A stretch of 64,000 nucleotides of DNA from Utricularia gibba (lineage: Eukaryota; Plantae; Magnoliophyta), in contig CM007989.1 of assembly GCA_002189035.1 (NCBI GenBank), positions 3,658,001 through 3,722,000 of the forward strand, read 5' to 3'. Both the position numbers and the translations under genes were made by a program. Positions 3,301-54,148 of this stretch are shown here, piece after piece. Under the pieces are notes generated by a model. It was not told the origin of the DNA and did no database searches. It saw only the letters and a list, made by a program, of their open reading frames with translations. Numbering within the stretch: position 1 is the stretch's first letter; every line of letters begins with the position of its first letter.

Positions 3301-4394
3301 CCTTTACACTTCTTGGCAAGCCTCACAGTAACATCTCCTAGTTCTGCATCAGCTTTCCCAGCATGACGAGATAGGATGTTTAAGCAATCTTGATCATCCA
3401 GCAGTTTCAGATTGTGCACCAGATTTAAACCAGGAGAAGCAACTAAGGACGCAACATCTTCGCTACGAGTTGTTACTATGATCTTGCTCCCGGCAGGGCC
3501 AAACCGGAAGGGACTGCACAGATCCTCCCATAGATGGTAGTCAACATTCCAGACATCATCCAAGACGATGAGAAACTTGCTGTTAGACAACTTGTCCTTC
3601 AGAGTTACCTGAAGAAGATTCAAGTCCAGAGAGGTAGTTACTGTCTCTGTTACAAACTCGTAGATCAACTTGGTGATTCCAAATACATTAAATTCTTCAG
3701 ATACATAAACCCAAACCCTCACATCAAAGTTTTTCTTCACAGCTGCATCATTATAAACAAGTTTGGCAACAGTCGTTTTGCCGATGCCTCCCATTCCAAC
3801 AATGGGAATGATGGAAATAACATCACTGCTCCCAAGCAGATCCTCGATGATTGAATCTTTGTCTCTGACTCTACCACACACAAAGGAGTCTACCAAGGAA
3901 GTTCTAGGAACCCTTGTGGTTACAGATTGATCACAGGAACCTCCACCATTGTTCTTCAAGTTCAACTTATCTCCCCACTTCCTAATCTCCTGTAACCTGT
4001 TGTTGATCTCCTTTATCCTTGTCATCATGTTCTTATTGAATATGGGTGTTCTACTGTTGAAAATGGGAATGCGGTTCGATACCATCTGCAAATTAGACTC
4101 TTTGATCCTCTCTTGATGCTGAGTCTGGACTCGAGTTTTAATCTCATCCAAAATATCATCCAAGTCATAAGCAATGTTCCTGAGTTCGGACAGCCATTTT
4201 TTTACAAAGTTCACAGTAGACTGCTTTTCCTCAGCATCAGCAAGAATACCTTTGATTAATTCCAAGCTTTGATTCAACTTGTTGAAAGGATTTTCTACTC
4301 TTTGTCTGCGGGCCAGTGCATCAAATGCCTGAGAGGCCAACTCCTGAACTAAAGCTTGAACAATAGCAGATAAAAAGATCTCGCCCACAGGCAT
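393..4394 (-). CDS. CC-NB-ARC-LRR disease resistance protein (RGA/RPP13-like/At3g14460-type), single coding exon, 1333 aa
   Basis: N-terminal CC with EDVID-like YDLDDILDE, P-loop GMGGIGKTT, kinase-2 FLIVLDDVW, RNBS-B GSKIIVTTR, GLPLA, MHD (FVMHDL) and a long LRR region. Uninterrupted ORF. Confidence 0.97.
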   Translation of the reverse strand: MPVGEIFLSAIVQALVQELASQAFDALARRQRVENPFNKLNQSLELIKGILADAEEKQSTVNFVKKWLSELRNIAYDLDDILDEIKTRVQTQHQERIKESNLQMVSNRIPIFNSRTPIFNKNMMTRIKEINNRLQEIRKWGDKLNLKNNGGGSCDQSVTTRVPRTSLVDSFVCGRVRDKDSIIEDLLGSSDVISIIPIVGMGGIGKTTVAKLVYNDAAVKKNFDVRVWVYVSEEFNVFGITKLIYEFVTETVTTSLDLNLLQVTLKDKLSNSKFLIVLDDVWNVDYHLWEDLCSPFRFGPAGSKIIVTTRSEDVASLVASPGLNLVHNLKLLDDQDCLNILSRHAGKADAELGDVTVRLAKKCKGLPLAAMALGGLLRTKYTKEEWENVAQSNIWDLPGVPVIPALRLSYYHLPLHLKRLFAYTSIFPKDYKFDKNELVHLWMAEGFLEGQDDQENKGSQYFDELLSRSFFQTSGDNASTFVMHDLINELAQFVAGGICYCLDEKMDAKDKLPMEARHTSFIRHEYEVFEKFKYFHRVKGLRTFLPMPVEVSQGCAPYYLSNRILAELIPELHRLRVLSLSGYSITEIPSSVCSLIHLRYLNLSGTSIVALPASLGKLVNLQILSIRNCRFICKLPRSLGNLLKLRHFDNTGTDQLKDMPVEIGQLESLQTLPKIVLKKGMFGLKEMRGLKCLRGTLAIFELQNVCGDPGIMEAHLRSKHLLEDLHLAWGAESDQSPDKKSEKILIEQLQPHVNIGSLKVEFFREFPTWMGDHSYTKLSRVSILNCLECDSLPPLGQLPGLKHLRIGNLPNIRRIGEEFYGTGTDRKFPKLESLRFDDMPQWREWIGFYSADGVRIEFTHLKDLAVTKCGKLMVISPLAFPVLSKLDLEDCSKELLLSFLSLNLLTYLKIEAVSGLLHFPKELVESLVALEALECCNCNEMLALWSEGIEQGQLTRLRRIIIIDCLQLVSLGYGERQLPCNLEVLELFHCPSLTFLPRQLSSLGFLRELIIKKCMKLVTFPGIPSSLKRLEILSCNAVESLPSNIFYLERLEIKDCSSLQKWTCVLPIALRKLGIKNCSQLEPISENMLLGKGRMLLEDLSSSNWSNFKYLGHHLYELKHLVKLHLSSCHSIKHFPEKGLPSSLRSLHIEDCTKIKSLPSNMTSLLSLEIQSCPSLTIFPNFDLPPNLSSLRVLDSKKLKPLKQWGLSTLSSLKEFSICGGFKDLQQLSDDGSHLFPPSLIRCSIARFPKLTTLAKVLDNLKLLRYLSIMNCTKIGILPSEEVLAKLWHLEISDCEALKYKCVKDRGEYWGKISGIPCVEIDGTSVYKTLSLR
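3778..3799 (-). promoter_or_regulatory. miR482/miR2118-family target site in the NLR P-loop coding sequence
   Basis: The plus strand reads TTGCCGATGCCTCCCATTCCAA, 3 mismatches from miR2118 UUGCCGAUUCCACCCAUUCCUA as recalled. P-loop targeting by this family is established. Confidence 0.65.
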
Positions 4395-5245: not shown

Positions 5246-9254
<4,009 letters not shown>

Positions 9255-18200: not shown

Positions 18201-20005
18201 AAGATTGAAAAAAAAAGGGCTCTAATATAATAGTTCGCACAAAATTCGTAACATAATTGACCAAAAAGCATGTGCCCACCTCTGCATGGAAGCAAAAACT
18301 TTCGACAAATTGGTCCCAGATATCTAATCAATTTTTTCGGTAATCAAATTGGTCCAAGAGATCTAAGATAATCAAAAGCTTACGTTAATTCTCGTGTTGC
18401 CTGAGATGTTAAGCCAGAAATGCGGTACTTCCTCCGCATATTCCCCCGGTGGGTAACTTCAACTTTAATGCCTCTTAGAGCCTTTTTGATCTGAAAAAAA
18501 AAAAAATCAAATGAGTATCACCCAGTTCTATCCAACTGTGAATTTCGATATCAAAATAAGAATGGACTCATCTTTTCTGACCTTAACACGATCAGCATCA
18601 GACAAAGGTCTACCTGACACATCCCTATTCAGCAACTTTGCAACAAAATCAATCACTGGAAGTGGTTCAATAAAAGCAGTGGACGACATATCTGTCAAGG
18701 AAAAGGAGATGGATGATAACTTGAAAATTCAGAAAACCAACAATCATATTACAAACGACTGGAGATGCTGAACTCACCTATATTCAATGACAAACCCATC
18801 TGTGTGGGTCGGATACTTTGATAAAAACCACGCCAACTTTCAAGTCCATCCCCCAAAGGCTGCCTTGTACCCAAATCCGGGGAATAAAAAGATCGTCCGA
18901 CTGGACAGTAGCTGGGACTGAAATGATCATGAGTCATTTTAAATAGTCTGTAATTACTAATTTCAGTTATTTAAACCATACCGTTTGGTGGGGAGTTCGC
19001 GTAAAACAATATCCAAGACCTGCAAAGCCTCCTGGGGTGCATCTGCTTGTCTTCCTTGTAAAAACATTGCCAGATGGTGCAAGTCTGCACGCGCTGCAAA
19101 CTTGATCACCACCTTGAAATCTCTCTCCCTCCTGCATTCAAGATTTGAGGTACACGGATATCATGAGACGAGATGGAATATGATTAAAAACAAGTGAAAA
19201 TATGTAAATTAAAAAGGACAAAGACCTGACACCGCCTTGGCCATCATCTTCATCGACAAGGGTGATCTTGAATTCCTTTAAAATAAAGGGCAGTGGCCCT
19301 GCAGTATACAGACTCTTCCTTCCATCATATGCAGGAAGCCTCTTTCCCAGGTGAGAATCCTTGTAAAGCTTCACCAGTTGCTGAATGACAGCTCGATTCA
19401 CTCCACGTGATGTCACCTCAGGCGTAATTGTGACCTGAAAACAAGTTAGCCGTGCTCGACGTTACACTACTAATGTAGTCGACAAGAGAGAGTGTAAAAT
19501 ATAAACAACTTACATCATACTGATGAAAATCCTTATCAGGCAACTCGGCAAAAAAGTGGTTGGCCTTCACCATGCATCTAATACCATCGACACCCTTACC
19601 CGGCCTTGGGGGGAATCTAATGGACTTGCTTGAAGCAGGCTGCATCTGTTGCTGCAGTTTACTTTGATGTGTCGGATCCGCCAACTCAACAGAAACGGGT
19701 CCAGTGTCCCGAGAAGAACTTGCCTCTCCATATGTTTTATGTTCAACTACAGGTTTGTAAGCGGACTGTGTAGCTTGGTGCAGGTCCGGAGCCGCTGGTC
19801 TAGATGACCCACCAGCAACCTGGTACTGCTGAGCAGGCGCCCCCCGTCCACCTCCGCCATAGCCTCGTGGAGGGCCCCGGCCTCGCCCACCATATGGTGG
19901 CTGCTGGAATGGAGGGCGCTGACTGCCACCCCGCCCACCGCTAGCTTCCTGAGGCTCGGATCCCTCACTGCTTCCAGGTAGGTCGGTTCTTCGCTTCCTC
20001 ACCAT
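15273..20005 (-). CDS. AGO1: Argonaute 1 (multi-exon, slicer-competent)
   Basis: Starts MVRKRRTD with a Gly/Arg-rich N-terminus. Motifs [40 protein letters not shown]; PIWI catalytic D ([10 protein letters not shown]), D (RDGVSEGQF) and H ([16 protein letters not shown]); ends VKRVMFYC*. Contains a miR168 site. Confidence 0.98.
19771..19791 (-). promoter_or_regulatory. miR168 target site in AGO1 coding sequence
   Basis: The plus strand TAGCTTGGTGCAGGTCCGGAG compared with miR168 UCGCUUGGUGCAGGUCGGGAA differs only at miRNA positions 2, 17 and 21. Confidence 0.93.
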
Positions 20006-20322
20006 TGCTCCTCTGCAACTAAAAAGGAAAAAAAAAAAAAAACAAATCCAATTCAAAGTGCATACACTATCATTAAACAAGAGATATACAGAATCCCCGT
20101 TCCAATTCAAACACGATCGCACAAAAAACCCAGCACAGAAGTTCTCAACGTGAAAAACAGTAACTTCAGTGCACATCCACCATTCCGGGCTACAAATTTC
20201 AAATCAAGCCGAGAAACCAAAACCACAGCACAAGCGCAAACAACAACCATTAGATCTGGAATCAAGTTGACGCGAATCTGAAACAATCTACCTTCCGCCA
20301 CCAAAGCTCTAATCCTCTGTCA

Positions 20323-35056: not shown

Positions 35057-38000
35057 TTAGGATGATATGGGTTCATACGGGTATTGCAACCAGGGGTGCT
35101 TCAGCGCCTCCGCAGCCGACGGCCGCTTCTTCGGGTTCACTTCCAGAAGGTGGGCGACAAAATCCACGAAGCCCTGATCGCCCATCGGCAGCCGGTGCTT
35201 CAGGGACGACTTCTTGGGTATCAGATACTCCAGTCTATTAGAGTCCTGGATGCAGAGCGTTACAGAAAAGATCAGGCAGGCGCAAACATTAACCTCTCCA
35301 TTCAAACTGCAACAAGGAGTTAAGGGAGTCACCTGGTTTCTTTCGTAAAGCATGTGGTTTTTGGTGAAATATTTGTACGTATCTTTTCCTCTCCTCAGGA
35401 TCTCTGGTTCGATTGGCCCAATAATCCCGATTACTCTGGCAAGCAGAGTGGCAGGGGAGTCATTTTGGAATAGCACCTGCAGTGATGAGGGAAGAGAAGA
35501 ACCAACCATGGTCAGATGATATTGGGACTGGGGAGAGATGCAAACTAGCACAACTTACGTTGCCTGTACAGAGTTCTGCCAGGATGCAACCAAGAGACCA
35601 AATGTCAATCTTTTTATCGTATGGAAGTCCTAAAATGACTTCCGGTGCCCGATACGATCTAGATTGAACATATGAACAAAGATGGTCTGTCTCAAAGCAA
35701 CTACTTCCGAGATCAATGACTTTCACCTCGCATCTACTGTAACTTTTCACTAGTATATTCTCTGGTTTAAGGTCACAATGGATGAGGCCAAGGCCGTGAA
35801 GGAATTGAAGAGCTTCCAAGCACTGAATTGTGATTGACTGCACAACGATGACCCTATTAAAAGCAGAACTCACGATGCAGAAAAGTGACTGCCATAATGG
35901 AAACGAACCTGTAACCTTGGCATTGTGAAGTAGACCTCTCCACCAGATTCTCGGTTAAATTTATGGAACTCGTACAGGTTTGCTTTAAGCAATTCACATA
36001 CAATCAATAGATGTTCCTGCATACAAAACAATCATGCTTGTCAGCAGGATCACATGGCATACACGTCAAGATCAGAGAATTATGGTGCTTAGGATCACTT
36101 ACTCGATAATAGAAGTAATCATATAACCGAAGAATGTGATGCTTGTCACCAGGATCATGCTTGTTTACATATTTTAAAAGCTTTATTTCGTCAAGGCTCT
36201 GGTCAAAAAAATCCTTGTTGTTCTTTATTACTTTCACACAGACATCCATGCCAGTGTGCAAATCATGCGCCTGAATAGCCTTACTGAATGCGGCTGACCC
36301 CAGATATTCAGTGACATGATAGCGCCCAGCGATGACAGAGTTCAAAACAACATGAAAATTCTTGTCCTCCTCAAATCCAGTCCTGAAGAAAGTTCACGGA
36401 TTAAATTCACTGGACCTGAAACTTGATGTTTGAATCACATGGAATAACAGCCCCTACAGTTTCAGAGGGGGAAGCACTTTGACTAAAGAATAAGAAGCAA
36501 AAATGGTCACAGCATCCAGCGTAAAAACACGGACTTCAACGAAGTAGCTGAACAAAATAGTCCATACCTGTTTTTCCTGTGTACAATCTTCAAATAAAAG
36601 GTCTCAAACTCTTCCTCTTGTGCTCGTATTTGCTTCACTTGCTCTTGCACAACAGCAGCTTCTTCATCTTCCAAAGATGCTGCAGAATCGCCAATTCTTA
36701 AAACTGCTCCCTTTGAATCATCTTCCCTTGCATGTTTTTTCTCACAATGATTTGAGCAAGAAGAAGGGCTAGAAACAGCAAATTCCCCTGCATTATCAAG
36801 TTTTTCAGCCCTATGGCTTTTGGTTGGAAATGATTCACTGCTTTTATGCCTCCATGAACCAGGCATATCTTCATTAGCTATACCATCTTCATCATTTTCA
36901 TCAATGGCAGCGGCATTACCCCTTATTGACAACAAAGGTTTGCTTGAGCTTTCAGGAAGCAACCCCTCATGTCTAGCATGGGGAATGAGAACCCACCATC
37001 CATATGCCTTTTTGCAAGGGAATACGCATATTGATTTTCTGCATTATGTCTAATAGTTGAATTTGTCTCGTTTTTTGAGTTATCACTGACAGACTTATCC
37101 AACTCATCCTGTCGACATCCATATGTAGCAACGCCAACATCACGATCCAAGTAATACTCTAAATCACCTTCATGACTTCCTCCAACCAAACTTTCATGTG
37201 CTTCACTGCCTATATCAGCAACATCGCTGTTGATTCCTACCCCGATTGACCTGACTGAACCATGTTGATCATCATCAAGGTAGACATCCCCAGGGTGCAG
37301 CCGCTCGCATTCATTGACAACACTTCCTTTACCAAGAATAACGAGTTCATTTGTCTGGGTGACGAAGCCTTGCCATACAGGTTCTGCTTGCATCAAAATC
37401 AGTTCCTCCGGATCCATCAAATGACCATCATAATTGCTTAACTCACTTTTGTTGTTCCTTCTACACAACTGAGTTTTGGACATGCCAACAGGATCATCTG
37501 ACTGGACAACAGAATCAATATTTTTGGACTGGAAAGACTGCTCCCCAGAGATGTATGAATCTTCTTCAGCGAATGACTGATCATCTTCATCATTTTTACT
37601 CTGCCTCCTTTCTTGAGGGTTCGGAATATCTCTGTGCCCTGTCTCTTTTTCATTCTCACTGGGTAATCAATTTCATGAGCCAGAAACCAGGTCTCGTCTT
37701 CAATAGGCTGTCTCATATAACCAACATCATCTTCATCTTCATATTCATCCGAGTCCCAATATTCATTATAGTAGTCAATTTTCTCACTGACTCCATTGCC
37801 CATATTTGCAAAACCAGAAACAAGACCAGATGCATCCTCAGCAATGCTGTGACTTATAGAAAGCCATCTACCTCCTCCGAGCATTTTTCCTGAGCCATCA
37901 TTGATAAAAACAAGAAAAGTGGCATAAAAATAAGAAAGAGCTTTTCATAAAAAGAATTACTTTATTGCAGATACAAGCTAAAATATACAACTCGCATCAA

Positions 38001-39407
38001 CATAAACTTCTTAAAGCTTAACAAGTGAAAGGACCACATCATCAAATGGGCACTCCATCATTCATATGAACCATAGCATCAGAGAAAAACCTATACTAGA
38101 CCTTAAAAGTTAATAGCCTCAATGCTAGTCTTAATTCAATAGCTTCTTTTTTTAAAATATTAAGATAACATTATACTTGAAATCATAGAGTCCTTGGTTT
38201 CAAAACTGATTTTAGGCAAACCTGAGGTGTTGATTTCTTGGCCAACAGGCATATCCAAGAATGACCCGACATGAAGAGCATTTTCCCCATTCGCTATCTT
38301 AGGAACCGGTCCTTCCTGGTCATGTTTCTCATCCCAATGAATATTGAAAGGTTTCTCTTCAGACTTGAGCTTCACTGGTGGAAGTCTTGGGAGCTCTTCC
38401 CGTTGACTCTCAGACACACGAAAATCCTTTAGCTCATTGCTCTGGGTCTTCCCAAAAAAAAGGGCTCTTCCAACCTCATCCATTTGCTCCTTTATGGCTG
38501 CTCGAATCCCATCAAGCTCTGGTTTCCCTTTTCCATCATTTTTATCAACAAGAGGAGGCACGCCATTGAAACTGGTTGAGGTGTCTTCCTTGGAGAAGGG
38601 AAAAACGGTTTTCACTGAACATCCTTTCATTAGGTCTTGTGAATTCGCATGGACATCAATTCTGGAGCATGAATTCCCAATAATGTCATCTTTCACGCAC
38701 ATGTTATTTGGCTTCACCAACTTGTCAGCTAACTTGCATTCAAGTGTATCATACAATCGTCCAGAAATTGGATTACTAGTATTTCCAGGCCAAGAGAGTC
38801 TCCTTTCACTGAGAAAACTCGAACTCTCAAGTGGATTTTTACGCACATTGGCACTACCCAAGTTTTTATATGAATTTGGCCTGGCCTTCCCAGACACCTG
38901 GGGTTCCAAATTATCATCATGATCCAGTGCAACTTGACCATTCATCATCCCATAGTCCCATGGATACAAATCCAATTCATCATCATCAGAACTCCTGGAG
39001 AATGTAAAGTTCTTATCACTAGTGCCAACACTTGCATTGACCTTATTATGCTCACCTACTGTGCTATAGACCATCCACTTGTTCTCCAAACCATTTTTTC
39101 CAGTAGCGCAGTCAACTTCCTTCACAATTAGCTCCTTGGGTGCCTCCACACCACCTGATGCCGCTGAATCCTTTGGATTTTTCACAGTATGCCTAGCGCT
39201 GTTGTTTGAATCTTCTTCCACAACAGTGGCACCATCTGTGTTGTTTGATATGATCCCTGACTCCTGATCTGAAATAATTAGCTTTTTTAGGAATCCATTC
39301 GACGCTGATCTGTTATCCAGTTCACCTCTCAGTGCAGCCTCGGCTTCAGTGAATTTGTTGTTTCTGAGGAACTCCAGCACAACATCCACGGGATTTGAAT
39401 CAGCCAT
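35057..39407 (-). CDS. DYRKP: Plant-specific DYRK kinase (DYRKP type) with LisH-like N-terminus; two apparent -1 C errors (36980-36983, 37661-37663)
   Basis: [26 protein letters not shown]; IGSFLD-like VGSFLDMP; [14 protein letters not shown]; [15 protein letters not shown]; IHCDLKPEN; [26 protein letters not shown]; ends [13 protein letters not shown]. Confidence 0.92.
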
Positions 39408-40215
39408 ACATACACATACACACCGAAGAAGCGCATACAACAAAGGCGCTAGGAACACCACTCTGCCACACGGCCCACGCCTGAAAAGAAGGGAAGCAAA
39501 AAGAAGGAACCAGAGGTCCCTAGTTCAACACCCATTTAAGTACACTGAACGCTAACTATCGAACGTGCAATTTCCAGGATCCACCAGGACTATGCAACCA
39601 AAATCCGAATTATAAGAGCGAAATACATATATACAAAAATACAGAACATCATTACACTCAAGTTGCCGGCACGGAAACAAGGTAAGAAAACAAGAACGAG
39701 TAGCAGAAAGTGGACTGAGAACAACAAAGAAACAAGGAATTACTCCAGCATTCAAAAAATACCGTGCTTGACAAGAAACACCGAGGAGATTTCAGAAAGA
39801 TCTGCTCTTTCTTCCTAAACCCTAAGACATTACCCCAAATAGCTGAAATGGGAACAGAAGGAGCCTCGTAACGAACTGAAGTTGAAAACTTACAGATCGA
39901 CAAAATGTCGCAAGGGGAATCCCCAGTAGCTGCTGCTGAATGCATTCCTGTTCCTGCTCCAAAAACGACAGCGAACATCCCAATTCAAAACTCGTCCACC
40001 TCTATTTTCACTTTTTACCACACAAAGTTACTTTTGTTTTGGAGGTAACTGGACAAGGAAGACTTCGGCGAGGCGAGTGTAATAAATAGATCTCGCTCCG
40101 TACTGCTTCTGCAAAGCAACAAGAGCAATCCCAATTTTTAGGTCATAATGCCCATGCAAAAACATGAAGACGTGGAAAATAGCATATGGAAAGATCTCAT
40201 TTTATATGGATGATA

Positions 40216-40260
40216 ATGGGCTTATGGCCCAAACATGGCCCAGATGATGTAAATGGGCTT
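40216..40260. promoter_or_regulatory. Site II cluster in the divergent kinase/KdsD promoter
   Basis: TGGGCT, GGCCCA, GGCCCA and TGGGCT within 45 bp between two divergent 5' leaders. Confidence 0.6.
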
Positions 40261-40654
40261 CCCCATCAAGTCGTTGCTAGTCACGGGATCACCTTCCGAT
40301 TCGTGCCGCTCCGATCGGCTTTCTTCCTCCGGTGGCGTTTGCAGGTGCGCCTTTGTGTTTTCTGGTGTGACGGAGAATCATGTGTTGCGGGCCGGCGCTG
40401 GTCATGATTTGAATCAGTGTGTGAAGGAGCATTGTCGAATACCCTTAATCCTTCTTGTGAAATGTGGTCATTGTCGGTTGCATTGGAGAAAGCAATCTAT
40501 GGGTAGTTGTCTCTTAATTTGATTGGTTGGCAAGCATCGATCACATTCAATCAATTGTTTCATTGATGATTTGAATGAAAGCGTTCTTCCAGACTTTTGT
40601 CTTGGGGAATTCGACGGCGTCTTGCGTAGGAACAAGGTTTAATCTAGAACGTAA

Positions 40655-41982
40655 ATGGGGTCTCTCTCCAACCAATCAGCTAATGCCGGTGAAGTGAAGG
40701 GATCACCGGAGGGGAACGTGGATCCTACCCGTTTGCTCGATCTCTTCAGATGCCAGCAGAAGTACATCAATCATTTCTTCCAGAATCTTGATCTCTCCCA
40801 GACGCTGATCTTCGCGCAAACGCTCTTAAATGCTAAAGGTACCGTTTTTTTCTCCGGCGTTGGGAAATCCGGCTTTGTGGCACAGAAAATTTCGCAGACA
40901 CTCGTCTCCCTCGGAATCAAATCTGCGTTTTTATCCCCGTTGACGCACTTCATGGAGACATCGGCATTTTGACGGCCATGGATTTGTTGGTTCTTTTCAG
41001 TAAGAGCGGCAATACAGAGGAGCTTTTGAGACTTGTTCCCTGTGCTAAGGCGAAGGGAGTCTATTTGATTTCTGTGACTTCTGTGAAGCCTAATGGTTTG
41101 ACGGGTGTTTGTGATCTGAATGTGCATTTGCCGCTGGAACGTGAGCTTTGTCCTTTCGATCTTGCGCCAGTGACATCGACGGCGATTCAGATGGTTTTTG
41201 GGGACACGGTGGCGATTGCACTTATGGAGGCGAGGAACTTGAGCAAAGAAGAGTATGCTGCTAACCATCCTGCTGGGAGGATTGGAAAAAGTTTGATATT
41301 CAAGGTGGGGGTTCTTTCCTTTTATAGCATTCCGCTTGATTTGCATTTGGTTGGAGATTTTCTTGAAGAAACATTGATCATAAATGTCACCATTACTGTA
41401 TTCGGTGTTACCATGATTCCTTTAAACGTCATTCCTGAGTAAGAGCTTGTGTTAAGAAAAAGGCAATTGCAGAAAAGATTGCGACATGCAGTTCTTTGCA
41501 TTTGGTTTCTGTGAAGTCCTCTTATGAATCTAATCAACAGGTAAAGGATCTTATGAAGAAAAGAGAAGAGCTCCCCATCTGCGGGGAACATGATCTGATC
41601 ATGGATCAGCTGGTGGAGCTGTCAAGCAAGGGCTTTGGCTGTCTTCTTGTAGTAGACGATGACTATCACTTGTTGGGCACTTTCACCGACGGAGATCTAC
41701 GGCGAACATTGAAAGCGAGCGGTGAGGCAATCTTCAAGCTGAAAGTTGGAGAGATGTGCAACAGGTACACAAATCAAAGCGCAATAGTCATCACTGATAC
41801 CCAGCTAATATGGAATCGATTTCAGGAACCCGAGAACCATACACCCTGAGGCAATGGCAGTTGACGCAATGCAGAAGATGGAGTCTCCACCATCAGCTGT
41901 GCAGTTTTTGCCAGTCGTCAGTGGGGACAATGCAGTGATTGGTATCGTTACATTGCACGGCTTGGTCTCTGCTGGCCTCTAG
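40655..41982 (+). CDS. SETH3: D-arabinose 5-phosphate isomerase (KdsD/GutQ family, SIS + CBS domains; Kdo synthesis); one apparent -1 C error at 40935-40938
   Basis: [23 protein letters not shown], [P][66 protein letters not shown]. Confidence 0.94.
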
Positions 41983-42296
41983 TTTTCCATCGTAAAACTA
42001 CATCCTTCTGTTATTCTTGGTATTCTTTCATACTTCCAAAAAGAAGAAAACTTTGAATCCAGAAGTACTTGTCAATGGCCTGCCTTTCTTAGCATGTGTA
42101 TGTACTGCAGTTTGCTATGTTCACTTTCATTTGAGAAAAGTCTGTTTTTAACATGTTAATTAATCATACCCAGTTGTAGCCATGAAGGTCAGTGGTCGTC
42201 CTCACAAGAGTTTCTTCCATGGCATTTGTCGTGTCGCCTCCATATAAACTAGGGTTCTTGGTCGTCGAGGTCAATTTGGAGATAAAATATATCTTA

Positions 42297-42356
42297 AAAA
42301 TGTAATCTTGAAATCTCTATATAATCCAAAATGTAATCTTGAGATCTGTATGTAAT
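42297..42356. repeat. 31-bp tandem duplication (2 copies)
   Basis: AAAATGTAATCTTGAAATCTCTATATAAT and AAAATGTAATCTTGAGATCTGTATGTAAT, period 31. Confidence 0.8.
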
Positions 42357-42458
42357 GACTTGACTATCTATTTTAAAAATCATTGTCTGAAAGATCAGCT
42401 GATTGACGGAAAACTGCTAAAATTTGTTATCAGGATGAAATAGAAGCAACAGAATTTT

Positions 42459-44564
42459 ATGGAGTGTGTTTTTTTGCAGTCGTCACGGCGGCCGCCGCTA
42501 ACCGGCGCTGCGCCTCCGTATCCTCTGTTGTCTGCAATTTGCAGAATCGAATCCTTCGAACACGGGAAGCCTTCGACTCTGGCCTTTCGCGCGTTTCCAG
42601 TAAGTACATCTGACTTTTTTTGTCTCAAGCTCCGAGTGTTGCCTCCTCCGCGAACTGATAGAAGTTTTTGACCTGAAGCTTCTGCAGACTTCACCGACGA
42701 TAAGCAGTTACAGCATTCTTGCTTCAAGGGTCCCGTTAAGGCCTTCCTTTGCATTCATTTCAAGGAACTCTTATGGTATTCGTCGAATTTCCTGCTAATT
42801 ACCTGTTGCTTTTCTTCTCTGTGGGGAAAGGTGAAGTGTAGGTTTTGCGTATTGCTATTCAAGTTACTATGGCTTTTCCTGCCAGAGGGCCAGAGCAGCG
42901 ACGTGTACGACCAAGAGCTCCGATCAGTTCTTGAACTTGCCACCGACTCAGAATTATATGAACTTGAAAGAATCTTATTTGGTGCCAGGTGATTCATATT
43001 TATATTTGAAACATGGTGTTCCGTGGGAATTGTGGGTTCATTTTTGCTTGCTGATGCCAAGCTATTACCCTGTGCAGCTATTTCAGTCCATTGTTGAAAT
43101 CAATTGGACAGAGAGCTGATGTTGATCATATCATGATTGAGGAAGATCCAGATGAGAGGGAACGTTTCATTTCAATGCTGGAATCACGATTTTTTTATCT
43201 CGCAGCTGATGCACGGTCAATATTGAGGTCATTTTGCCACTCTTGCTGGATGCTGCTGAAAGTGTGCTGCTGTATACATGGTTTTTGAATGAATAGGTTT
43301 TCTACTCTGCATCCCTTGTTTCCCCAAGATCAAAATCTGGTGTTCTTAATATTTCAGGGGATGGAGACCATCATACAGAAATGTGTTGCTTGGAGTGAGA
43401 AAAATGTTGAATATACCTTGTTCTGCCAAGCTATCCTCTGAAGGTCTGGAAGTCGAGATTTTTCTTCACCTCACGAATTACTCAAGGTAGACGTGGTAAC
43501 TGAAAAGGAGCCTGTGCTGTTTTACACTACATGGCTTTCCAATCAACATCTTGGCATTACCTACTTTCCTTTCTTTAGTGAAGAAAGTGGATTGTTTAGT
43601 GGAGCTGAAGATAGCTCAAGGAACCGTGGTGCATCTAATAACCTCGAGCTAGGTCTCAGCCAGTGGAAGCTACAAAAACTTGCAGGTCTAGGAATCGGAG
43701 CAGCAGAGCTCCGTGCAGTAATGCTGAAGGTTCAGTTTGATTCTCTGTCGGTTGTTTAGCCTACTACCCTTCTGCCAACTTAATTTTCTTGCTTTTTATA
43801 CTGAAGAGTGGGGGAGTGCTTGCGGTAACGCAACTACTGGAACTGGTGAGGCACTGCACCTTGATCCATATAGATTCAGGCTTACTCTGAGAATCCTGAA
43901 GCAGCATAGCTGCATGTACCTCACTGCAGTTTGGAGGCAGGTTGTCAGGGAAGATGGCGTTGGAACTAGCTAAGTATCATACGAAGAAGGAACTGTTGAA
44001 GAAGGTTTGAACACGGTATCGCGTCTGGCTGCATATTAGTTACACGCTCTTATGTAAAGCATTCGCCTTTGATTTCAGTGTGGGCAGTTGGCGGCGATCA
44101 ATCTTGAATCAGCAGCAGCATTGGTTGCTGCTAAGCAGGTGCCTTGTCGTTCATACATTTTATGCCCATTTTACATTACTTCAGTTTACAGAAGCTTGAT
44201 TCTTGGACACAGGGGCTGAAAGCTGCCGCACTTCGATATCTGGGGCTCAGGAGCGTCGCCCAGTTGCTCGGGCCGCTGTAAGATCATCCGTTCCTGTGTC
44301 ATCGTTTCGTGGTTTTCCGGCGATGATTGATGGGTGTGTTTTGCAGGATGTGGGGCAACTTGTTAGCAGATTTAGTCATCCAGATGCTTGGAACAGACCA
44401 TGCAAGGATCCTGAGAGCCATTTACGCTTTGGCTCAGGTAACAGCACACCCCTCCACAGATTCAGACTGCCCTGAAACCTCAAAGTTGGAATTTTTCACC
44501 CCTTTCTCGGCGTTTCCAGATACGAATCTACCGCTCGCACGATACATCGTCGGACAGAGCTTGA
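42459..44564 (+). CDS. Conserved uncharacterised multi-exon protein with probable transit peptide (resembles At1g73470 as recalled)
   Basis: GT-AG exon chain giving YDQELRSVLELATDSELYELERILFG, SYFSPLLKSI, LESRFFYLAADARS, GWRPSYRNVLL, QLAAINLESAAALVAAK, MWGNLLADLVIQMLGTDHARILRAIYALAQ | IRIYRSHDTSSDRA*. Confidence 0.82.
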
Positions 44565-45066
44565 ACTGGGCTCAAAGGGATCAAGAAATCCAGCGACTCC
44601 CCGTCCACGCTCACTCCGGCGAGACGGTCAGCAGTCTGCTACATTATGGGCTCCTTTTTAGACCGTGTGTGGCCCAATGGGCTCGACAAGTTCTGAACAT
44701 GACGATGACCACCGCTAAATAGAAAGCAACGTGTGGTGTGGGACCCACACCTTCCTAATTTGTATAGTCCTTTTCCGCCTACGTCATCTCTGGGGGATAT
44801 TTAACATGATAAAATTATAATACCAATATTTTAAGTTTCGATTAATATAAATAATTTAATGCATAAATTTAAAAATTGCAAAAAAAAAACCTTCAAGTTA
44901 CTAAAATATTGTAATTAAGATTCAAATAATTTTCAAAATTTTTAAAAATTAAACTAATTCATGATGTTGTGAATCGTTTTTTATTTCAAATCCAACAATA
45001 TTTTGCATTAAAGTTTTTCGTATTTGCATATGAATTTCAATGAATCAAACGATATCCCTGTTAAGT

Positions 45067-45185
45067 TTATATCACGTTTGTGTATCGTATAATTCAAAAT
45101 ATTGATGGTTATATCGCGTTTATATCTTATATGATTCAATTTGATGATGATTATATCACGTTTCATATAATGCACTGTTATAATG
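45067..45185. repeat. Degenerate 42-bp tandem repeat (about 3 units) in AT-rich intergenic DNA
   Basis: Units begin TTATATCACGTTT, TTATATCGCGTTT and TTATATCACGTTT at 45067, 45109 and 45151; units 1 and 2 match at 30 of 42 positions. Confidence 0.75.
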
Positions 45186-46790
45186 TCTTTAAGATCAAAA
45201 CTATTTAGTTTTGCTAAAATAAGGAATCTATGATGTAATTTTATAAGTTTGGAGTACAAATGTTTATAAAAAATGTAAATTGAATGATATATATTGAATT
45301 TTGAAACTTGAAAATTAAAATATTTATATTAGTAACTTGGATGTCGCCCACTAAATCCACCCTATTTAATATATATTTATTTTGTTCAAGTACACCCTAA
45401 TTTGCAAAGTAAATAATAAAAAATAAAAAATTGTGTAATAATGTTTCGGAATCATAAGTTTCAACTCTAATGTAATGGGAAAGTAAACTGATTAAAAAAA
45501 ACATATTTTTTATTAAATAAAAAAGTCAATAAAAATGGTGGGGCCCATGGAGGCCGGCATTTAGGCACGCTTCAAGGCTATCTCTGCCCGTCTTCCCGTG
45601 GTAGATAGGCTATGCGGATGGACATATTTATTAGATTATCTGCTATATTTTTTTATTTTAAATGGAATTTAATAAACAATATAAATATGTAATAATAATT
45701 TTTAATGTGTAATACTTTTTATAGTAAGAATAAGACAACTTCACACCGTTGTCGTGTCGTGGTTGACCCGTCCCATTCCCTCCTCGTTTTTTTTCTTTGG
45801 CGCCAATGTCCATGCATGCATCTATTCATGTCCCCTGAAAAATTTATTGATGTGGTTGCATTATTTTCTTGAATCGCAGACTATTTGTAATTAAAAAAGT
45901 TTAAAAAAAGTTACAAGTTGAAGCTATTACACAAGTGGAGAAGCATATAGTACAATAATCGTGTTCTGGAAGATGGATATAATGCAATAAAGTATTGAAA
46001 AGGGTATTCATTTGGTGTTGTTAATTTATCGCAGCGGGAGATCCATTCCAGTGTCGGTTTTTTCTCATTTACTGTGGGTCAGGTAAACTTGTTCTTTGGT
46101 GAAGGATTATGTTTTGTTTTTCAGACGGGGTTTGGTTTCTGGTTGGGGAGATAATGGGTGTTGGATTCAGTTGGGGGGGATTCGATTTTTTTAACTTGAT
46201 TTGATGGGTTTAGACATTAGCGATGCGGGCTTGTGTAAAGTCTGTGCATTCATTGTTGTGGGATTTCTTATTGGTTATCTTGAATTGTTGTGGGGTTATG
46301 TACTGTGAAGATCTTGGAGAAGTTTTAGATTTTATATTATCATGCATTGTAAAGAATCCATTTTTAATTTGGATTCGAGCCGTGCTCTCTCAGTCCCAGA
46401 ACAATAAGCCAGAAATCATTGTCCCCACATTCTTGATTTCTTTATTTGTACAACTGCCAAAGGAAATGCCTATCATGCAATATTTTATACGGGTGGATTA
46501 TTTAACTCTCTAGATGTCCGGATTCTTTATCAAGTGGGGAGATTTTCAATCGGTTTTTTTTGTCATTGCTTGATGCGATGAGATTCTCGAGGATGAGTTT
46601 TTTCAAAGCCGTATCCCACTCTGAGTTGCTGTTCTGAGATTGATTTATTATGCTCGTGTTGTGAACCCTCACCTGTGCTTGGACTTTGTGTTCTGATTCT
46701 TGTTTTTCTCTGGTTGAGTAATCTTTTCAGCGTTTTTCATCAACTGGATCTGCTCTCTGCTTGGCGCTGTGCCCCCAGAAGTTGAATGAG

Positions 46791-47838
46791 ATGCTGTGGT
46801 CATTTTCAAACAAGAGCTCTGGTCCTCAGTTCTTATCTTTCAATGGCTCTCAAACTGAAAGGGCTATGATCCATTTTGATTCTCTCCCGTCATCTCGATT
46901 CGATATCGATGAATCCGATAGCAACAATTATCCTGCATCACAGGTAGCCTATGAGACTGACTTTCTTTTTGGAAGGATCTTTGTTTAGCTAATAGCTAAT
47001 AGCATTTTTCTTGATTATCTCTATTGTTTGTCGAACTCAGATAGCTTCGATTCTCGAGAGACGAGGGGGTCTTCCATGTTCAGCCACAACCTCACTTCCC
47101 ATTCACCGTTCCCTGCGTCTTGGTCAGAATCCGCTCATTTCTTCAACTCCACAGCACCATGCCGGAGTTCCGGCAATGACTTCTGTTTGTCTTAAAAGCC
47201 CTTTTGTCGCAACAACAGATGTAAGGTATGATATTAGCGTTTCTTGTGGGCTAGTCTTTTTACTGTCGGCAGAATGCGCTCGATTTCTGTTTCATAGAAC
47301 AAACATAGACGGGTTTGGGGTTTATCTTTATTTGGGTTTAGAAATTTAACAACAAGCAGCTTAAAGCATTCGAAACCCGCTTTCTGTTCTTCCCAGGAGT
47401 GACTCTAAGATCTCAGCAGCTCCCTCCGGCCAGCTAACGATCTTTTACAATGGCTCTGTGTCGGTCTACGACAACATTAGTCCTGAAAAGGTGGTTCCCC
47501 CCCGAATCCAACATGCTTCTCAGATGGGTTGCGTACACTCTCTGATGGTGTTGTTGTGGTTGCAGGCTCAGGCGATCATGTTACTTGCCGGGAACGAAGC
47601 TCCTGCAGCGGCTCCCCTCACTGCCCCTGAACCGGTGACATCCCGATTGACGTTGGCTCAGCCTCGCTGTTCACATCTCGAATCCAACAGCCATGACTCC
47701 GGTGCTACCAAACGCTATGAAGTTCTTGATGAGTGCCGCCTGATGCATTCCAAGGGAGTTTTTGTTGTTCCCACAAGACAGTTTTCAGGGGCCGTTTCGC
47801 AATGCCGCGGGTTTATTGAAAAACGCCGGAAGATATAA
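46791..47838 (+). CDS. JAZ3: TIFY/JAZ protein, JAZ3/JAZ4 clade, with a degenerate Jas motif
   Basis: WSFSNKSSGPQFLSF matches the JAZ3-type N-terminal WSFSNK...QFLSF. ZIM domain GQLTIFYNGSVSVYDNISPEK | AQAIMLLAGN (TIFY at 47437-47454). Terminal exon GAVSQCRGFIEKRRKI*. Confidence 0.85.
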
Positions 47839-47940
47839 CGAGAATAACGATGATGTGAGTAGTGATGGATCAGAAAGCTGTTTCGTTGTTTAGGATGGAT
47901 GATGAAGATGGCTGAGTTGGTTGTAGCGGCAAGAGATGAC

Positions 47941-47985
47941 CAACAATTCTTTCTTCATAATCTGGACCAATAATTCTTTCTTCAT
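47941..47985. repeat. 27-bp period direct repeat
   Basis: CAACAATTCTTTCTTCAT (47941) and CAATAATTCTTTCTTCAT (47968). Confidence 0.75.
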
Positions 47986-48331
47986 GCGAAAATAACACAT
48001 CAAATCGGGGAATTTTCCGATGCACCTGAACATGGCCCGGTTACCATACATTGATGGGCCTAGAATACAATGCAACCCATTCTAAAAGTGGACCCTTGGA
48101 GCCACATTTGTTGGTTTTCGCTCAACTCATTGCCTTCTTCGTGGGCCGTGGCTGCTCCAAGACGAGTTCAATCGTGGCGCGATTCAGCAAGTTTCAGTCT
48201 CTGATTTCATTTCAGTGAAAAGATGGCAACGGTTGGTTGCTACGTTCCGGGAGAGGATAACATTTGGGCATAAAGTTAAGCAATGGGTGCCGTCGCTTTT
48301 CCTTGTGAAGCTGAAGGAATTACCATCAGCG

Positions 48332-49876
48332 ATGGCAGCAAACGCCATCTCTCCTCCACTCACAGCGTCCCCAAAGAGCTTCCTCACCGATCAGACACAT
48401 TGGTCGCCGTCGCTTTCCTCCTCCGTGCGTCTCGGAGGCTTACGATATTCCCATCTGCCCATCAAGACAAGAGCTTTGAATCGAAGGGGTGGGTTCAGGG
48501 GAACGAAGCGCATCGTTTCCGCTTCGCTGTCGGCTCTCCCCGAAGCCCTTTTGTTCGATTGCGATGGGGTTCTGGTGGACACCGAGAAAGATGGCCATCG
48601 CGTATCGTTCAACGATACCTTTGATGAGGTACTCACTTCTGCCCCCTTTCTATGTTTGAGCTGAAGGCTGGTGCTGATTGAACTTCACATTCTGAAACGC
48701 AGAAAGAATTGGGAGTTACATGGGATGTGGACTTGTATGGAGAGTTGCTGAAAATTGGGGGAGGAAAAGAGAGGTAATTAATGAGCATTGAAGGTGAATG
48801 CTACCTCAGTTGGCCTGTTTTCACTCTGCTTACTGTAATGTGGATCCAACATAACATACTTTGGATCAGGATGACTGCTTACTTCAACAAAGTCGGCTGG
48901 CCGGAAAAGGCGCCGAGGAGCGAAGAGGAAAGAAGGGAGTTCATAGCATCACTTCACAAGAGAAAGACACAGCTTTTCATGGTACTAATAGAGAAGAAGC
49001 TGCTGCCTCTTCGCCCTGGAGTCGCGAGGTAAGCCCCTACAGATCTTGATTCATTCAGCTTTTGTAGATAATTTGCTTGTTCGTTGTTCTCTGGCAGTAA
49101 TGTCTGTAGCCTTCAACAGATTAGTTGATCAGGCTCTGGCAAGTGGAGTTAGAGTTGCTGTCTGCAGTACTTCAAATGAGAAAGCAGTATGATAATCAGG
49201 CTCCTTTGTGTATAATGCTGCATGAGAATCTAACTCAGGCGAACCTTTTTTTTTTTGGCATGTTTCATAGGTCTCTGCTGTAGTGTCATTCTTGTTAGGA
49301 CCAGAACGAGCAGAGAAGATCCAAATATTTGCAGGAGATGTTGTTCCTCGTAAGAAACCGGATCCGGTAAGACTCTGATCCTACAAAGGACAGTTCTTGA
49401 TGTTAAATAAAGCATCAGAATCAAATGCAGAAACCTTATGTGTATCATACTTCACTGCAGGCCATTTATCTCCTAGCTGCAGAAACTCTCGGAGTTGATC
49501 CTTCCAGGTTTACTCTTCACTTGAAGAAGGCGAAAGCATCAAAACCGTGATCAATTCTAACATGGGGCTTCCTGTTTTACTGAACGCAGCTGTGTCGTAG
49601 TGGAAGACAGTGCCATCGGTCTTCAAGCTGCGAAAGCAGCAGGCATGAAGTGTATAGTTACAAAGAGTGGGTAAGTAGATCAAAGCTTAAACCAAACCAT
49701 CCAAACCCTGTTCTTGTTGTTCTTGACTCGTTCTGCATCTTCTCACTTTCAGGTACACCGGTGATGAAGATTTCGTGAATGCAGATGCAGTTTTCGATTG
49801 CATCGGTGACCCACCGGAGGAGCGCTTTGACCTATCCTTCTGTGGTATCCTTCTCCAGAAACAGTTTGTTAGTTGA
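48332..49876 (+). CDS. CBBY: CbbY-like HAD hydrolase (xylulose-1,5-bisphosphate phosphatase type), chloroplastic
   Basis: Transit peptide, then ALLFDCDGVLVDTEKDGHRVSFN, LLKIGGGKERMTAYF, LPLRPGVA, AVCSTSNEKA, FAGDVVPRKKPDP, VVVEDSAIGL, ends LSFCGILLQKQFVS*. Confidence 0.94.
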
Positions 49877-50366
49877 TGACCAGCACTCACATTACACAAT
49901 CCATGAATCCAGTTACATACAACACCATCGAAGCAAATCTTACCATAAGAAGCATCCTCTTAAGTTGGCGAATTTAGCAGTGAAACAACAACGATCAATG
50001 AACTCCATGTGGATGATATACTAAGGTCTAACCCAATCCAACCGATTTGCCTTACACTGACGAGTTTTGAAATTTTGAACAACTTCCTCAGACTGTACAG
50101 GCCGAGTAATTTATCCACCCGGTCCAAGATCAACACCTGAACAACGCATGATCGCACACATTCAATCCCGACGGAATACTCAACTCCGACCGGAGTACCT
50201 ACGCGGAGTGATTTCGATTCGTTAAACCGGAGACGCCTGTCCTTCGAGCTCTCGAAGAATCGGCAGAAAACCTGCAAACGCACGTCGGCTGCAAAAGAAG
50301 AAAATTGGTATAACCGTTCCATAAATATTTTTATTAAAAAAATTAAATGCATTTTTCCTGTGAGTT

Positions 50367-52539: not shown

Positions 52540-54148
52540 ATGGGAGTTTGTGGGCAGTTACTGCTTCTTCTGGCTGTCTTCCTCACTGTTGCGGTCGCCG
52601 CCGAGGCTGCAACTGCTCGAGACCCTGAGGTCGTCGTTGAGGAGATCCACAGGAAGCTGAACGAGTCGAGGAGGAAACTCGGGTTTCTGTCTTGCAACAC
52701 CGGGAACCCGATCGACGACTGCTGGCGGTGCGATCCGAATTGGGAGAAGAATCGCCAGAAGCTAGCGGATTGCGCGATCGGGTTCGGGAAGGACGCCATC
52801 GGAGGCCGTGACGGGAAGATTTACGTCGTGACGGATTCGGGGAACGATGACCCGGTGAACCCGAAGCCGGGGACGCTCCGGTGGGGAGTCATCCAAGAAG
52901 AGCCGTTGTGGATCATCTTCGCTAGAGACATGGTGATTCAGCTGAAGGAGGAGTTGATCATGAACTCGTTCAAGACGATCGACGGCCGTGGCGCTAGCGT
53001 ACACATAGCCAACGGCCCATGCATCACTATACAGTACGTGACCAACATCATCATCCACGGCGTGCATATACACGACTGTAAGTCCGGCGGGAATGCAATG
53101 GTGCGGGACTCCACCAAGCACTACGGCTGGAGAACCATTTCCGACGGCGACGGCGTGTCCATCTTCGGCGGCAGCCACGTCTGGGTGGACCACTGCTCCC
53201 TCTCCAACTGCAACGACGGCTTGATCGACGCCATCCATGGCTCCACGGCGATCACCATTTCCAACAACTACATGACCCATCATGACAAGGTGATGCTTTT
53301 AGGCCACAGCGACACATACACTGAAGACAAGGGCATGCAGGTCACCATTGCCTTCAACCACTTTGGGGAAGGCCTGGTGCAGAGAATGCCAAGGTACCCT
53401 CTACCCATTATCATCGTCATCATCATCATCCATTCCTGACTGATCACGACGCTACTCGTCGGCGATGTTTCAGATGCAGGCATGGCTACTTCCATGTGGT
53501 GAACAACGACTACACGCACTGGGAGATGTATGCGATCGGAGGAAGCGCAGCGCCGACGATCAACAGCCAAGGCAACAGGTTTCTTGCTCCGGATGACAGA
53601 TTCAAGAAACAGGTGAGATGAGGTTAATTTGCTGAGTGGGGTAGTTGATTGGATTCCTTATGAGTAAATGAGGGTAGGCCATAGCCATAGGGCAGGTAGA
53701 GTAGAGGGATAAAGAGAGAAAACATTCCAGCACAAAAAGCACACAGTGTGAGACTATAGCAGATGTGGGTCAAAAAGGGGAATTGATGAAAGACCAGGGA
53801 CTAATTAGCAATAACGGGATGATGACTTCTTTTTTCAAAGCTCACATAAAACAGACCTGCCCTGCACGCCGGGGCAGCTAGGTACAGCATGTATTGGGTG
53901 CATTACACTGCGTCCTGGTTGAGTGCAGGTGACAAAGCATGAGGACGCCGCCGAGAGCGAGTGGAGAAACTGGAACTGGAGGACGGAAGGGACTTGATGC
54001 TGAACGGAGCCTTTTTCGTGACCTCAGGAGCCGGCGCGATCTCTAGCTACGCGAGGGCCTCTAGCTTGGGGGCGCGCCCTCCACTCTGGTGGCCTCCATA
54101 ACCTCCACCGCCGGCGCACTCAACTGTCGGAAGGGTGTCCGCTGCTAG
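52540..54148 (+). CDS. Pectate lyase (PL1 family, secreted); two apparent -1 errors in the last exon (53989-53991, 54077-54079)
   Basis: Signal peptide, [52 protein letters not shown] | [23 protein letters not shown][D]LMLNGAFF, ends [15 protein letters not shown] at about 52457. Confidence 0.95.

Follow-up and report, generated by a model that had tools for sequence, protein, structure and literature searches.

A transcribed TIFY6B-like gene with an intact TIFY domain and a disrupted Jas motif in Utricularia gibba

COI1 binding requires two basic residues, R205/R206 in JAZ1 and R223/K224 in JAZ9. In the COI1 pocket, R206 contributes to the coordination of inositol pentakisphosphate (IP5), and JAZ proteins that lack Jas (delta-Jas) are dominant and stable (PMC3355530). 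The Jas intron divides the motif into parts of 20 and 7 residues, and alternative splicing at this intron yields stable repressors (PMC7450174). JAZ sequences without degrons have also been found across land plants (PMC6829463). Jas-defective JAZ proteins are already known, and the gene described here, located in a 64,000-nt stretch of Utricularia gibba DNA (hereafter, the window), is a natural and hard-wired case derived from TIFY6B.

The delta-PY isoforms (Chung et al., 2010), as far as they are summarised in PMC7450174, likewise read through the Jas-intron donor into an immediate stop and lack X5PY. In the genomic TIFY6B loci of four Lamiales relatives used for the Jas-exon comparison (Sesamum, Castilleja, Erythranthe, and Fraxinus), retention of the Jas intron would give AGG-TAA at the homologous position. 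The delta-PY isoforms are regulated, whereas the read-through is hard-wired here by a GT-to-AT mutation of the donor. According to the same summary, they also keep the 20-residue N-terminal part of Jas for transcription-factor binding, which is broken here by a 15-nt loss. Arabidopsis jai3-1 (JAZ3 without its C-terminus) and JAZ1 delta-Jas offer a second comparison: the gene shares its clade with JAZ3, a splice-site lesion removes Jas function, and TIFY is retained, and by this likeness an escape from COI1-dependent turnover would be expected (PMC3355530). However, those are induced or engineered alleles of full-length genes with an N-terminal region, whereas this is a natural copy without exon 1 whose dominance is only putative. 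The natural splice variant JAZ10.4 is also a JAZ without a working Jas and shows TIFY-dependent repression (PMC7450174), but it holds MYC through an N-terminal cryptic MYC-interaction domain; none is evident here, where the N-terminal exon is gone.

JAZ7, JAZ8, and JAZ13 are further genome-encoded JAZ proteins in which the canonical LPIAR(R/K) degron is lacking, and they withstand degradation induced by jasmonate (PMC6829463). Unlike the present gene, they keep the Jas helix and X5PY, bind MYC, carry EAR motifs, and belong to a different clade. TIFY8, a non-JAZ protein with only the TIFY/ZIM domain and no Jas, would act through NINJA and TIFY partners and represents an old, separate subfamily. 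The gene studied here resembles TIFY8 in being TIFY-only but, from its homology and exon structure, is instead a recent TIFY6B derivative.

Homology searches assigned the gene by descent to the TIFY6B / JAZ3-4-9 clade. The top homologues were all Lamiales TIFY 6B proteins (Sesamum, Erythranthe, Castilleja, Andrographis, Salvia, Rehmannia, and Fraxinus), three of whose matches (P0004, P0012, and P0019) were intron-retaining mispredictions. The clade signatures, an N-terminal M(Q/L)WSFSNK..LSF block and a VxTTDxR block, were both present. By tblastn, exons 2, 3, 4, and 5 of the relatives were placed along the window in order, with boundaries that agreed with Sesamum and Castilleja; coding exon A matched residues 23–64 of the relative protein P0008 with an E value of 2e-8. 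The JAZ3-like identity proposed in the initial annotation was thus upheld. Word-indexed and exhaustive HMMER protein searches returned nothing nearer than other Lamiales families. A pectate lyase exon in the same window (52540–53439, + strand) was 82–88% identical to pectate lyase 5/18 of many eudicots; because no match exceeded 88% identity, the proteome of the source species seems to be absent from the protein collection.

A second copy was also detected. Across the TIFY exon junction, the RNA contig X3 record 7 (47469–47588) matches the gene with a single mismatch; beyond it, the contig departs into a sequence encoding ..AGNGPPQKAP.., which indicates an expressed paralogue with a canonical-looking linker. 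An alternative splice at the loose end of this contig (47588) was rejected: this position lacks a GT, and the part that fits, with its one mismatch, represents the paralogue. The supplement of PMC6829463 lists 11 JAZ entries for U. gibba, none of which matched the TIFY string of the gene or the paralogue fragment. On these comparisons, the gene is best described as having arisen in a Lamiales plant by duplication of a TIFY6B repressor gene, the type of Arabidopsis JAZ3/4.

The gene model was built from RNA contigs of X3 and X14 placed on positions 45700–48700 (Table 1). A 234-codon ORF is open on the + strand from an ATG at 46791 to a TAA at 47836–47838 and is carried by four transcribed exons, the first reaching from at least 46502 to 46943 and the last from 47566 to approximately 47990. 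The three introns of 97, 171, and 75 nt are all GT..AG and were correctly spliced in two runs from different studies, both of which supported the first junction (46943|47041). The transcript ends approximately 150 nt beyond the stop codon. The terminal exon was unspliced over its whole length, and no RNA contig had a splice junction at 47788 or past the stop. The Jas remnant had been annotated as a separate last exon beginning at 47789. This does not agree with the transcripts: the acceptor-like ttttcag|G at that position is present, but no RNA contig carries the junction, and the exon start was rejected. The annotated stretch itself was confirmed, with its true start at 47788, so that 47789 lies one base inside a Gly codon.

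Table 1. Features of the TIFY6B-like gene, in window positions
Feature	Positions	Strand	Evidence or remark
Possible exon 1 relic LDLMGLDISDAG (relatives MERDFMGL...DAG)	46198..46233	+	Weak; sole D[FL][LM]GL match in three frames of 38000–46800
5' leader	46502..46790	+	Occupies the position of the relatives' intron 1; X14 record 3 starts at 46502, X3 record 5 at 46574
Coding exon A (MLWSFSNK..LSF..FDSL)	46791..46943	+	Counterpart of the relatives' exon 2; first in-frame ATG
Coding exon B (ends ..VATTDVR)	47041..47225	+	Homologous to exon 3; junctions in X3 and X14; weak tblastn matches
Coding exon C, first part of the TIFY/ZIM domain (QLTIFYNGSVSVYDNISPEK)	47397..47490	+	Pfam tify E = 2.1e-11; RNA junctions
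Terminal exon, coding part	47566..47838	+	AQAIMLLAGN, short divergent linker, Jas remnant, stop; contiguous in X3 record 6 and X14 record 3
Jas remnant GAVSQCRGFIEKRRKI	47788..47835	+	Net 15-nt loss aligned between codons R (47806–47808) and G (47809–47811)
Former Jas-intron donor	47835..47838	+	GTAA in 4/4 relatives, ATAA here; collinear alignment
3' UTR (former Jas intron and beyond)	47839..47992	+	Transcript end at ~47980–47992, from contig ends

Several other genes were observed in the window. A multi-exon gene on the + strand (48231–49900) starts approximately 240 nt after the end of the JAZ transcript; it is HAD/CbbY-like by eye (..LFDCDGVLVDTEKDGHR..), and its contig depth was approximately 5–10 times that of the JAZ contigs in both RNA runs. 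On the minus strand, an intact single-exon ORF of 1333 codons (393–4394) encodes a CC-NB-ARC-LRR resistance protein (Rx_N, NB-ARC, winged helix, and LRRs), an ORF at 5286–5966 contains a SIS (sugar isomerase) domain, and an ORF at 19418–20176 contains the glycine-rich N-terminal region of Argonaute 1 (PF12764). The last of these is likely to be exon 1 of an AGO1-like gene that extends downstream on that strand.

The stretch was present in 18 public runs of one organism. Nine of these runs, from three studies, were labelled as RNA and contained 41–63% of the sampled words, as expected for exons only. No differences from the window were found in the RNA contig X3 record 6 across 47564–47980 or in the DNA contig X1 record 1 across 47701–47945. 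The RNA contig X14, from another study and another accession, spans 47564–47992 without indels. Over approximately 1.15 kb, the X14 transcript differed from the window at 11 listed sites between 46577 and 47826 (~1%), again without indels; it comes from a separate accession or haplotype, under the same organism label. Within 47788–47838, X14 differed only by an I-to-V change at 47815 and a silent change at 47826. Since the identical sequence was recovered in both RNA and DNA contigs, the sequence is real and the gene is transcribed and spliced. Single-base errors elsewhere in the window, pointed out in the initial annotation, would be in line with an assembly or sequencing artefact that conceals a true gene with a canonical Jas. 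This explanation is extremely improbable, as it is refuted by the DNA contig and by the RNA contigs of two independent studies, one of which used a diverged accession that differs by 11 SNPs but by no indel. The view of the same annotation that the stretch is not a sequencing error was borne out, and neither RNA nor DNA contigs restored a canonical Jas.

At the 5' end, the RNA contigs start at 46502–46574, inside the would-be intron 1, and run unspliced through the position of the relatives' exon 2 acceptor. The resulting 289-nt leader contains six upstream ATGs, one of which overlaps the start codon. In-frame stops lie upstream, and the first usable ATG is therefore that at 46791, where the protein reads MLWSF, equivalent to the conserved MQWSF of the relatives. 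Exon 1 of the relatives (MERDFMGL..) gave no significant tblastn match, and its DNA alignment had a p value of 0.38. The possible relic at 46198 (Table 1) has no ATG, an in-frame stop just upstream, and an RNA depth of zero. Because of the six upstream ATGs, translation of the transcript may be poor.

The TIFY/ZIM domain is intact. The protein matched PF06200 (tify) with an E value of 8.8e-13, beyond the curated cutoff, and TIFYNG is present as the TIF[F/Y]XG motif that marks the TIFY family within the ZIM domain. The initial annotation was correct in describing both this domain as intact and the reading frame as open.

The Jas region presented a different picture. In all four relatives, the TIFY6B locus has seven exons, and the N-terminal part of Jas forms its own exon of approximately 61–63 nt ending in ..KRKE-AG|GTAA. 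In the nearest Lamiales proteins, the Jas region reads (T/A)VPQFR(R/K)KSLARFLEKRKERV..SPY, and the Jas consensus of the nearest relatives is TVPQFRRKSLARFLEKRKERV. At the corresponding position here (47788–47838, + strand), GAVSQCRGFIEKRRKI is followed directly by TAA. The Jas core, counted from the GTN codon for Val through the codon for the Glu of KRKE, measures 54 nt in 4/4 relatives and 39 nt in this gene, where a cag|G that is collinear and acceptor-like precedes it and the former donor position follows it. The net in-frame loss amounts to 15 nt. Under the most parsimonious alignment, it removes the equivalents of (R/K)KSLA, and the Arg that follows them is Gly here. The exact site of the lost nucleotides within the exon is ambiguous, with many co-optimal alignments to Sesamum. 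A deletion-free protein alignment (QF-SGAV-S-QC-RG-F against QF-RRK-S-LA-R-F) was dropped, as the exon is exactly 15 nt shorter than in the four relatives between collinear boundaries. The in-frame loss that had been proposed is accordingly real, and it takes the second basic degron residue together with S-L-A. As for the residues, the loss and the R-to-G change were both confirmed, but the missing block corresponds to (R/K)KSLA rather than to KASLA, the consensus of the nearest relatives being TVPQFRRKSLARFLEKRKERV and not AVPQARKASLA.

Intron 5 of the relatives (90–130 nt) is unspliced in this gene. From the alignment, it would have been either precisely lost (FSG|AV against SSG|AV) or shrunk to a 33-nt in-frame remnant (47756–47788).

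The donor of the Jas intron is also altered. The AG|GTAA of the relatives is AT|ATAA here, with A in place of the G at intron position +1 (47835), and as a consequence the stop codon TAA corresponds to positions +2 to +4 of the old intron. RNA contigs were contiguous across the former donor and gave no sign of splicing there. The arrangement in which a spliced Jas intron separates the 20-residue part from X5PY is therefore absent, the donor being AT and not GT. No X5PY exon was found downstream, either in the RNA contigs or by tblastn or Smith–Waterman alignment up to 48230, and neither DNA nor protein alignments of the former last exon downstream of the stop were significant. The Jas and X5PY parts of the relatives had no significant tblastn match in the window. 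The +1 frame of the 3' UTR (..VSSDGSESCFVV-stop, 47855–47896) was considered as the old C-terminal tail and rejected (p = 0.89 for the P0018 tail; p = 0.30–0.94 for DNA). The absence of X5PY had been noticed before, and no downstream exon restores it; the donor mutation, the undetectable X5PY exon, and the missing first exon are observations beyond the initial annotation.

The consequences for the Jas motif were evaluated against known profiles and structures. PF09425, which describes the Jas motif as SLX2FX2KRX2RX5PY, gave no Pfam match even at E ≤ 1; S-L and X5PY are absent, and only F-I-E-K-R remains. The remnant matched no JAZ peptide in the PDB at E ≤ 10, whereas the Jas of a relative, used as a control, matched the crystallised JAZ9, JAZ10, and JAZ1 peptides. 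The JAZ degron has two basic residues at positions 5–6, as LPIAR(R/K) or VPQ(A/F)R(R/K). Here it reads VSQCR and then G, and since the second basic residue falls in the deleted 15 nt, the two required basic residues are not both present. Because the second basic residue, S, L, and A are deleted and X5PY is absent, the protein should not form a COI1/JA-Ile complex. The predicted insensitivity to COI1/JA-Ile, which the initial annotation had also put forward, is structurally sound given the degron residues lost. The Jas helix is in addition the MYC-binding surface; with this helix broken and no N-terminal exon, the protein is also unlikely to bind MYC directly.

These features bear on the proposal that the gene encodes a classical dominant JAZ repressor, in which MYC would still be bound, COI1 escaped, and jasmonate genes constitutively off, as with JAZ1 delta-Jas, jai3-1, and JAZ10.4. 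The loss of X5PY and of the degron core parallels known stabilised isoforms (PMC7450174; PMC3355530), the F-x-E-K-R basic stretch of the helix survives, and the TIFY domain needed for repression is intact. However, the published stabilised isoforms keep the 20-residue N-terminal part of Jas or an N-terminal MYC-binding motif (PMC7450174), whereas this gene has lost 5 of those 20 residues, differs at 6–7 of the 15 that are left, and lacks the N-terminal exon, and no Jas signal was obtained from Pfam or PDB peptides. We consider a dominant repressor of this kind improbable. The earlier description of the product as a stable dominant repressor was overstated, as such a repressor needs MYC binding, and the deletion and the R-to-G change break the helix that would provide it.

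Evidence for selection on the gene pointed both ways, and all counts were small. The TIFY block was identical to those of the relatives at 25–29 of 30 residues and departed from their consensus at 1 of 30 sites, whereas the Jas block was identical at only 7–8 of 20. Among the relatives themselves, the Jas block is as invariant as the TIFY block. The difference between 6–7 changed sites of the 15 remaining in Jas and 1 of 30 in TIFY was significant (Fisher p = 0.001–0.003). The far better preservation of TIFY suggests that purifying selection has continued to act on this domain after the loss of Jas. Between the window and X14, where polymorphism counts are tiny, exons 1–3 showed three synonymous and no non-synonymous differences (p = 0.014), and the whole CDS showed five and four, respectively (dN/dS ~0.26; p = 0.045). 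In the last exon, two synonymous and four non-synonymous differences gave a dN/dS of ~0.66, indistinguishable from neutral, and this exon alone is compatible with neutrality. The initial annotation had staked its reading on the gene being expressed and not evolving neutrally; expression was confirmed, and the TIFY domain and the upstream exons gave signs of constraint.

The copy might alternatively be an expressed pseudogene, a TIFY6B duplicate lost piecemeal after whole-genome or segmental duplication, with transcription and an open frame as leftovers and no functional protein. Several independent lesions are gathered at both ends of the gene (exon 1, the Jas core, the Jas-intron donor, and the last exon), the leader loaded with upstream ATGs derives from a former intron, and the last-exon dN/dS fits decay. 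The rate acceleration is specific to the gene: the end branch of the protein measured 1.49 substitutions per site where the family median was 0.44 (~3.4 times), and that of the control pectate lyase in the same window 0.27 where the median was 0.14 (~1.9 times). Moreover, the canonical-looking paralogue is co-expressed, and this copy could therefore be redundant. On the other hand, pseudogene decay does not readily account for a TIFY block left nearly unchanged beside a heavily altered and equally conserved Jas block, for the purely synonymous differences between accessions in exons 1–3, for three correctly spliced introns with RNA in runs from three studies, or for terminal-exon indels that keep the frame, leaving 234 codons free of frameshift or stop. 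A processed or unitary pseudogene would be marked by no transcription or by neutrality across its whole former CDS; this gene is transcribed and spliced, and its upstream exons and TIFY domain appear constrained. We regard decay as a serious possibility, though well short of probable.

We favour the reading, with a probability of roughly 55%, that the locus encodes a TIFY-only derivative that is blind to COI1, and probably to MYC as well, but remains under some constraint. The Jas domain of a TIFY6B duplicate would have been destroyed by two DNA lesions. The 15-nt in-frame loss would have taken the second basic residue of the degron along with the beginning of the Jas helix, and the +1 G-to-A change would block splicing of the Jas intron, such that every transcript ends in I-stop; the TAA is the one within the intron at which normal JAZ genes also terminate when the intron is retained. 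With the X5PY exon and the MERDF first exon apparently gone and transcription starting inside the former intron 1, the predicted product would be a 234-aa protein with an intact TIFY/ZIM domain. It would not enter the COI1/JA-Ile co-receptor complex, would hence escape jasmonate-driven degradation, and would probably not bind MYC factors through Jas. If translated, it could act only through TIFY, binding NINJA and pairing with other JAZ proteins, as a hormone-insensitive modulator or decoy. Against this TIFY-only derivative stand the missing first exon and the ATG-rich leader, as well as the long end branch and the near-neutral last exon.

It is a further step to suppose that selection has kept the copy for a TIFY-only protein that is encoded as such in the genome and is blind to both jasmonate and MYC. 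Such a protein would be a lasting counterpart of the transient isoforms made by intron retention, and it would tune the pathway by sequestering NINJA or by forming pairs with canonical JAZ proteins. We put this forward only tentatively and consider it rather doubtful. A lineage-specific rewiring of jasmonate signalling, as envisaged in the initial annotation, is without evidence, no sister-species orthologue having been found in the homologue searches; nor is rewiring shown by this gene alone, because the canonical-looking paralogue is still expressed.

If the gene is only a fading duplicate, it represents ordinary gene loss after duplication. If the protein is made and retained, it would be a natural experiment on a JAZ with only the TIFY domain, relevant to the long-standing question of how repression by delta-Jas proteins works in the absence of the transcription-factor-binding motif (PMC3355530). 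The locus also illustrates how a regulated splice isoform can become genomically fixed by one donor mutation.
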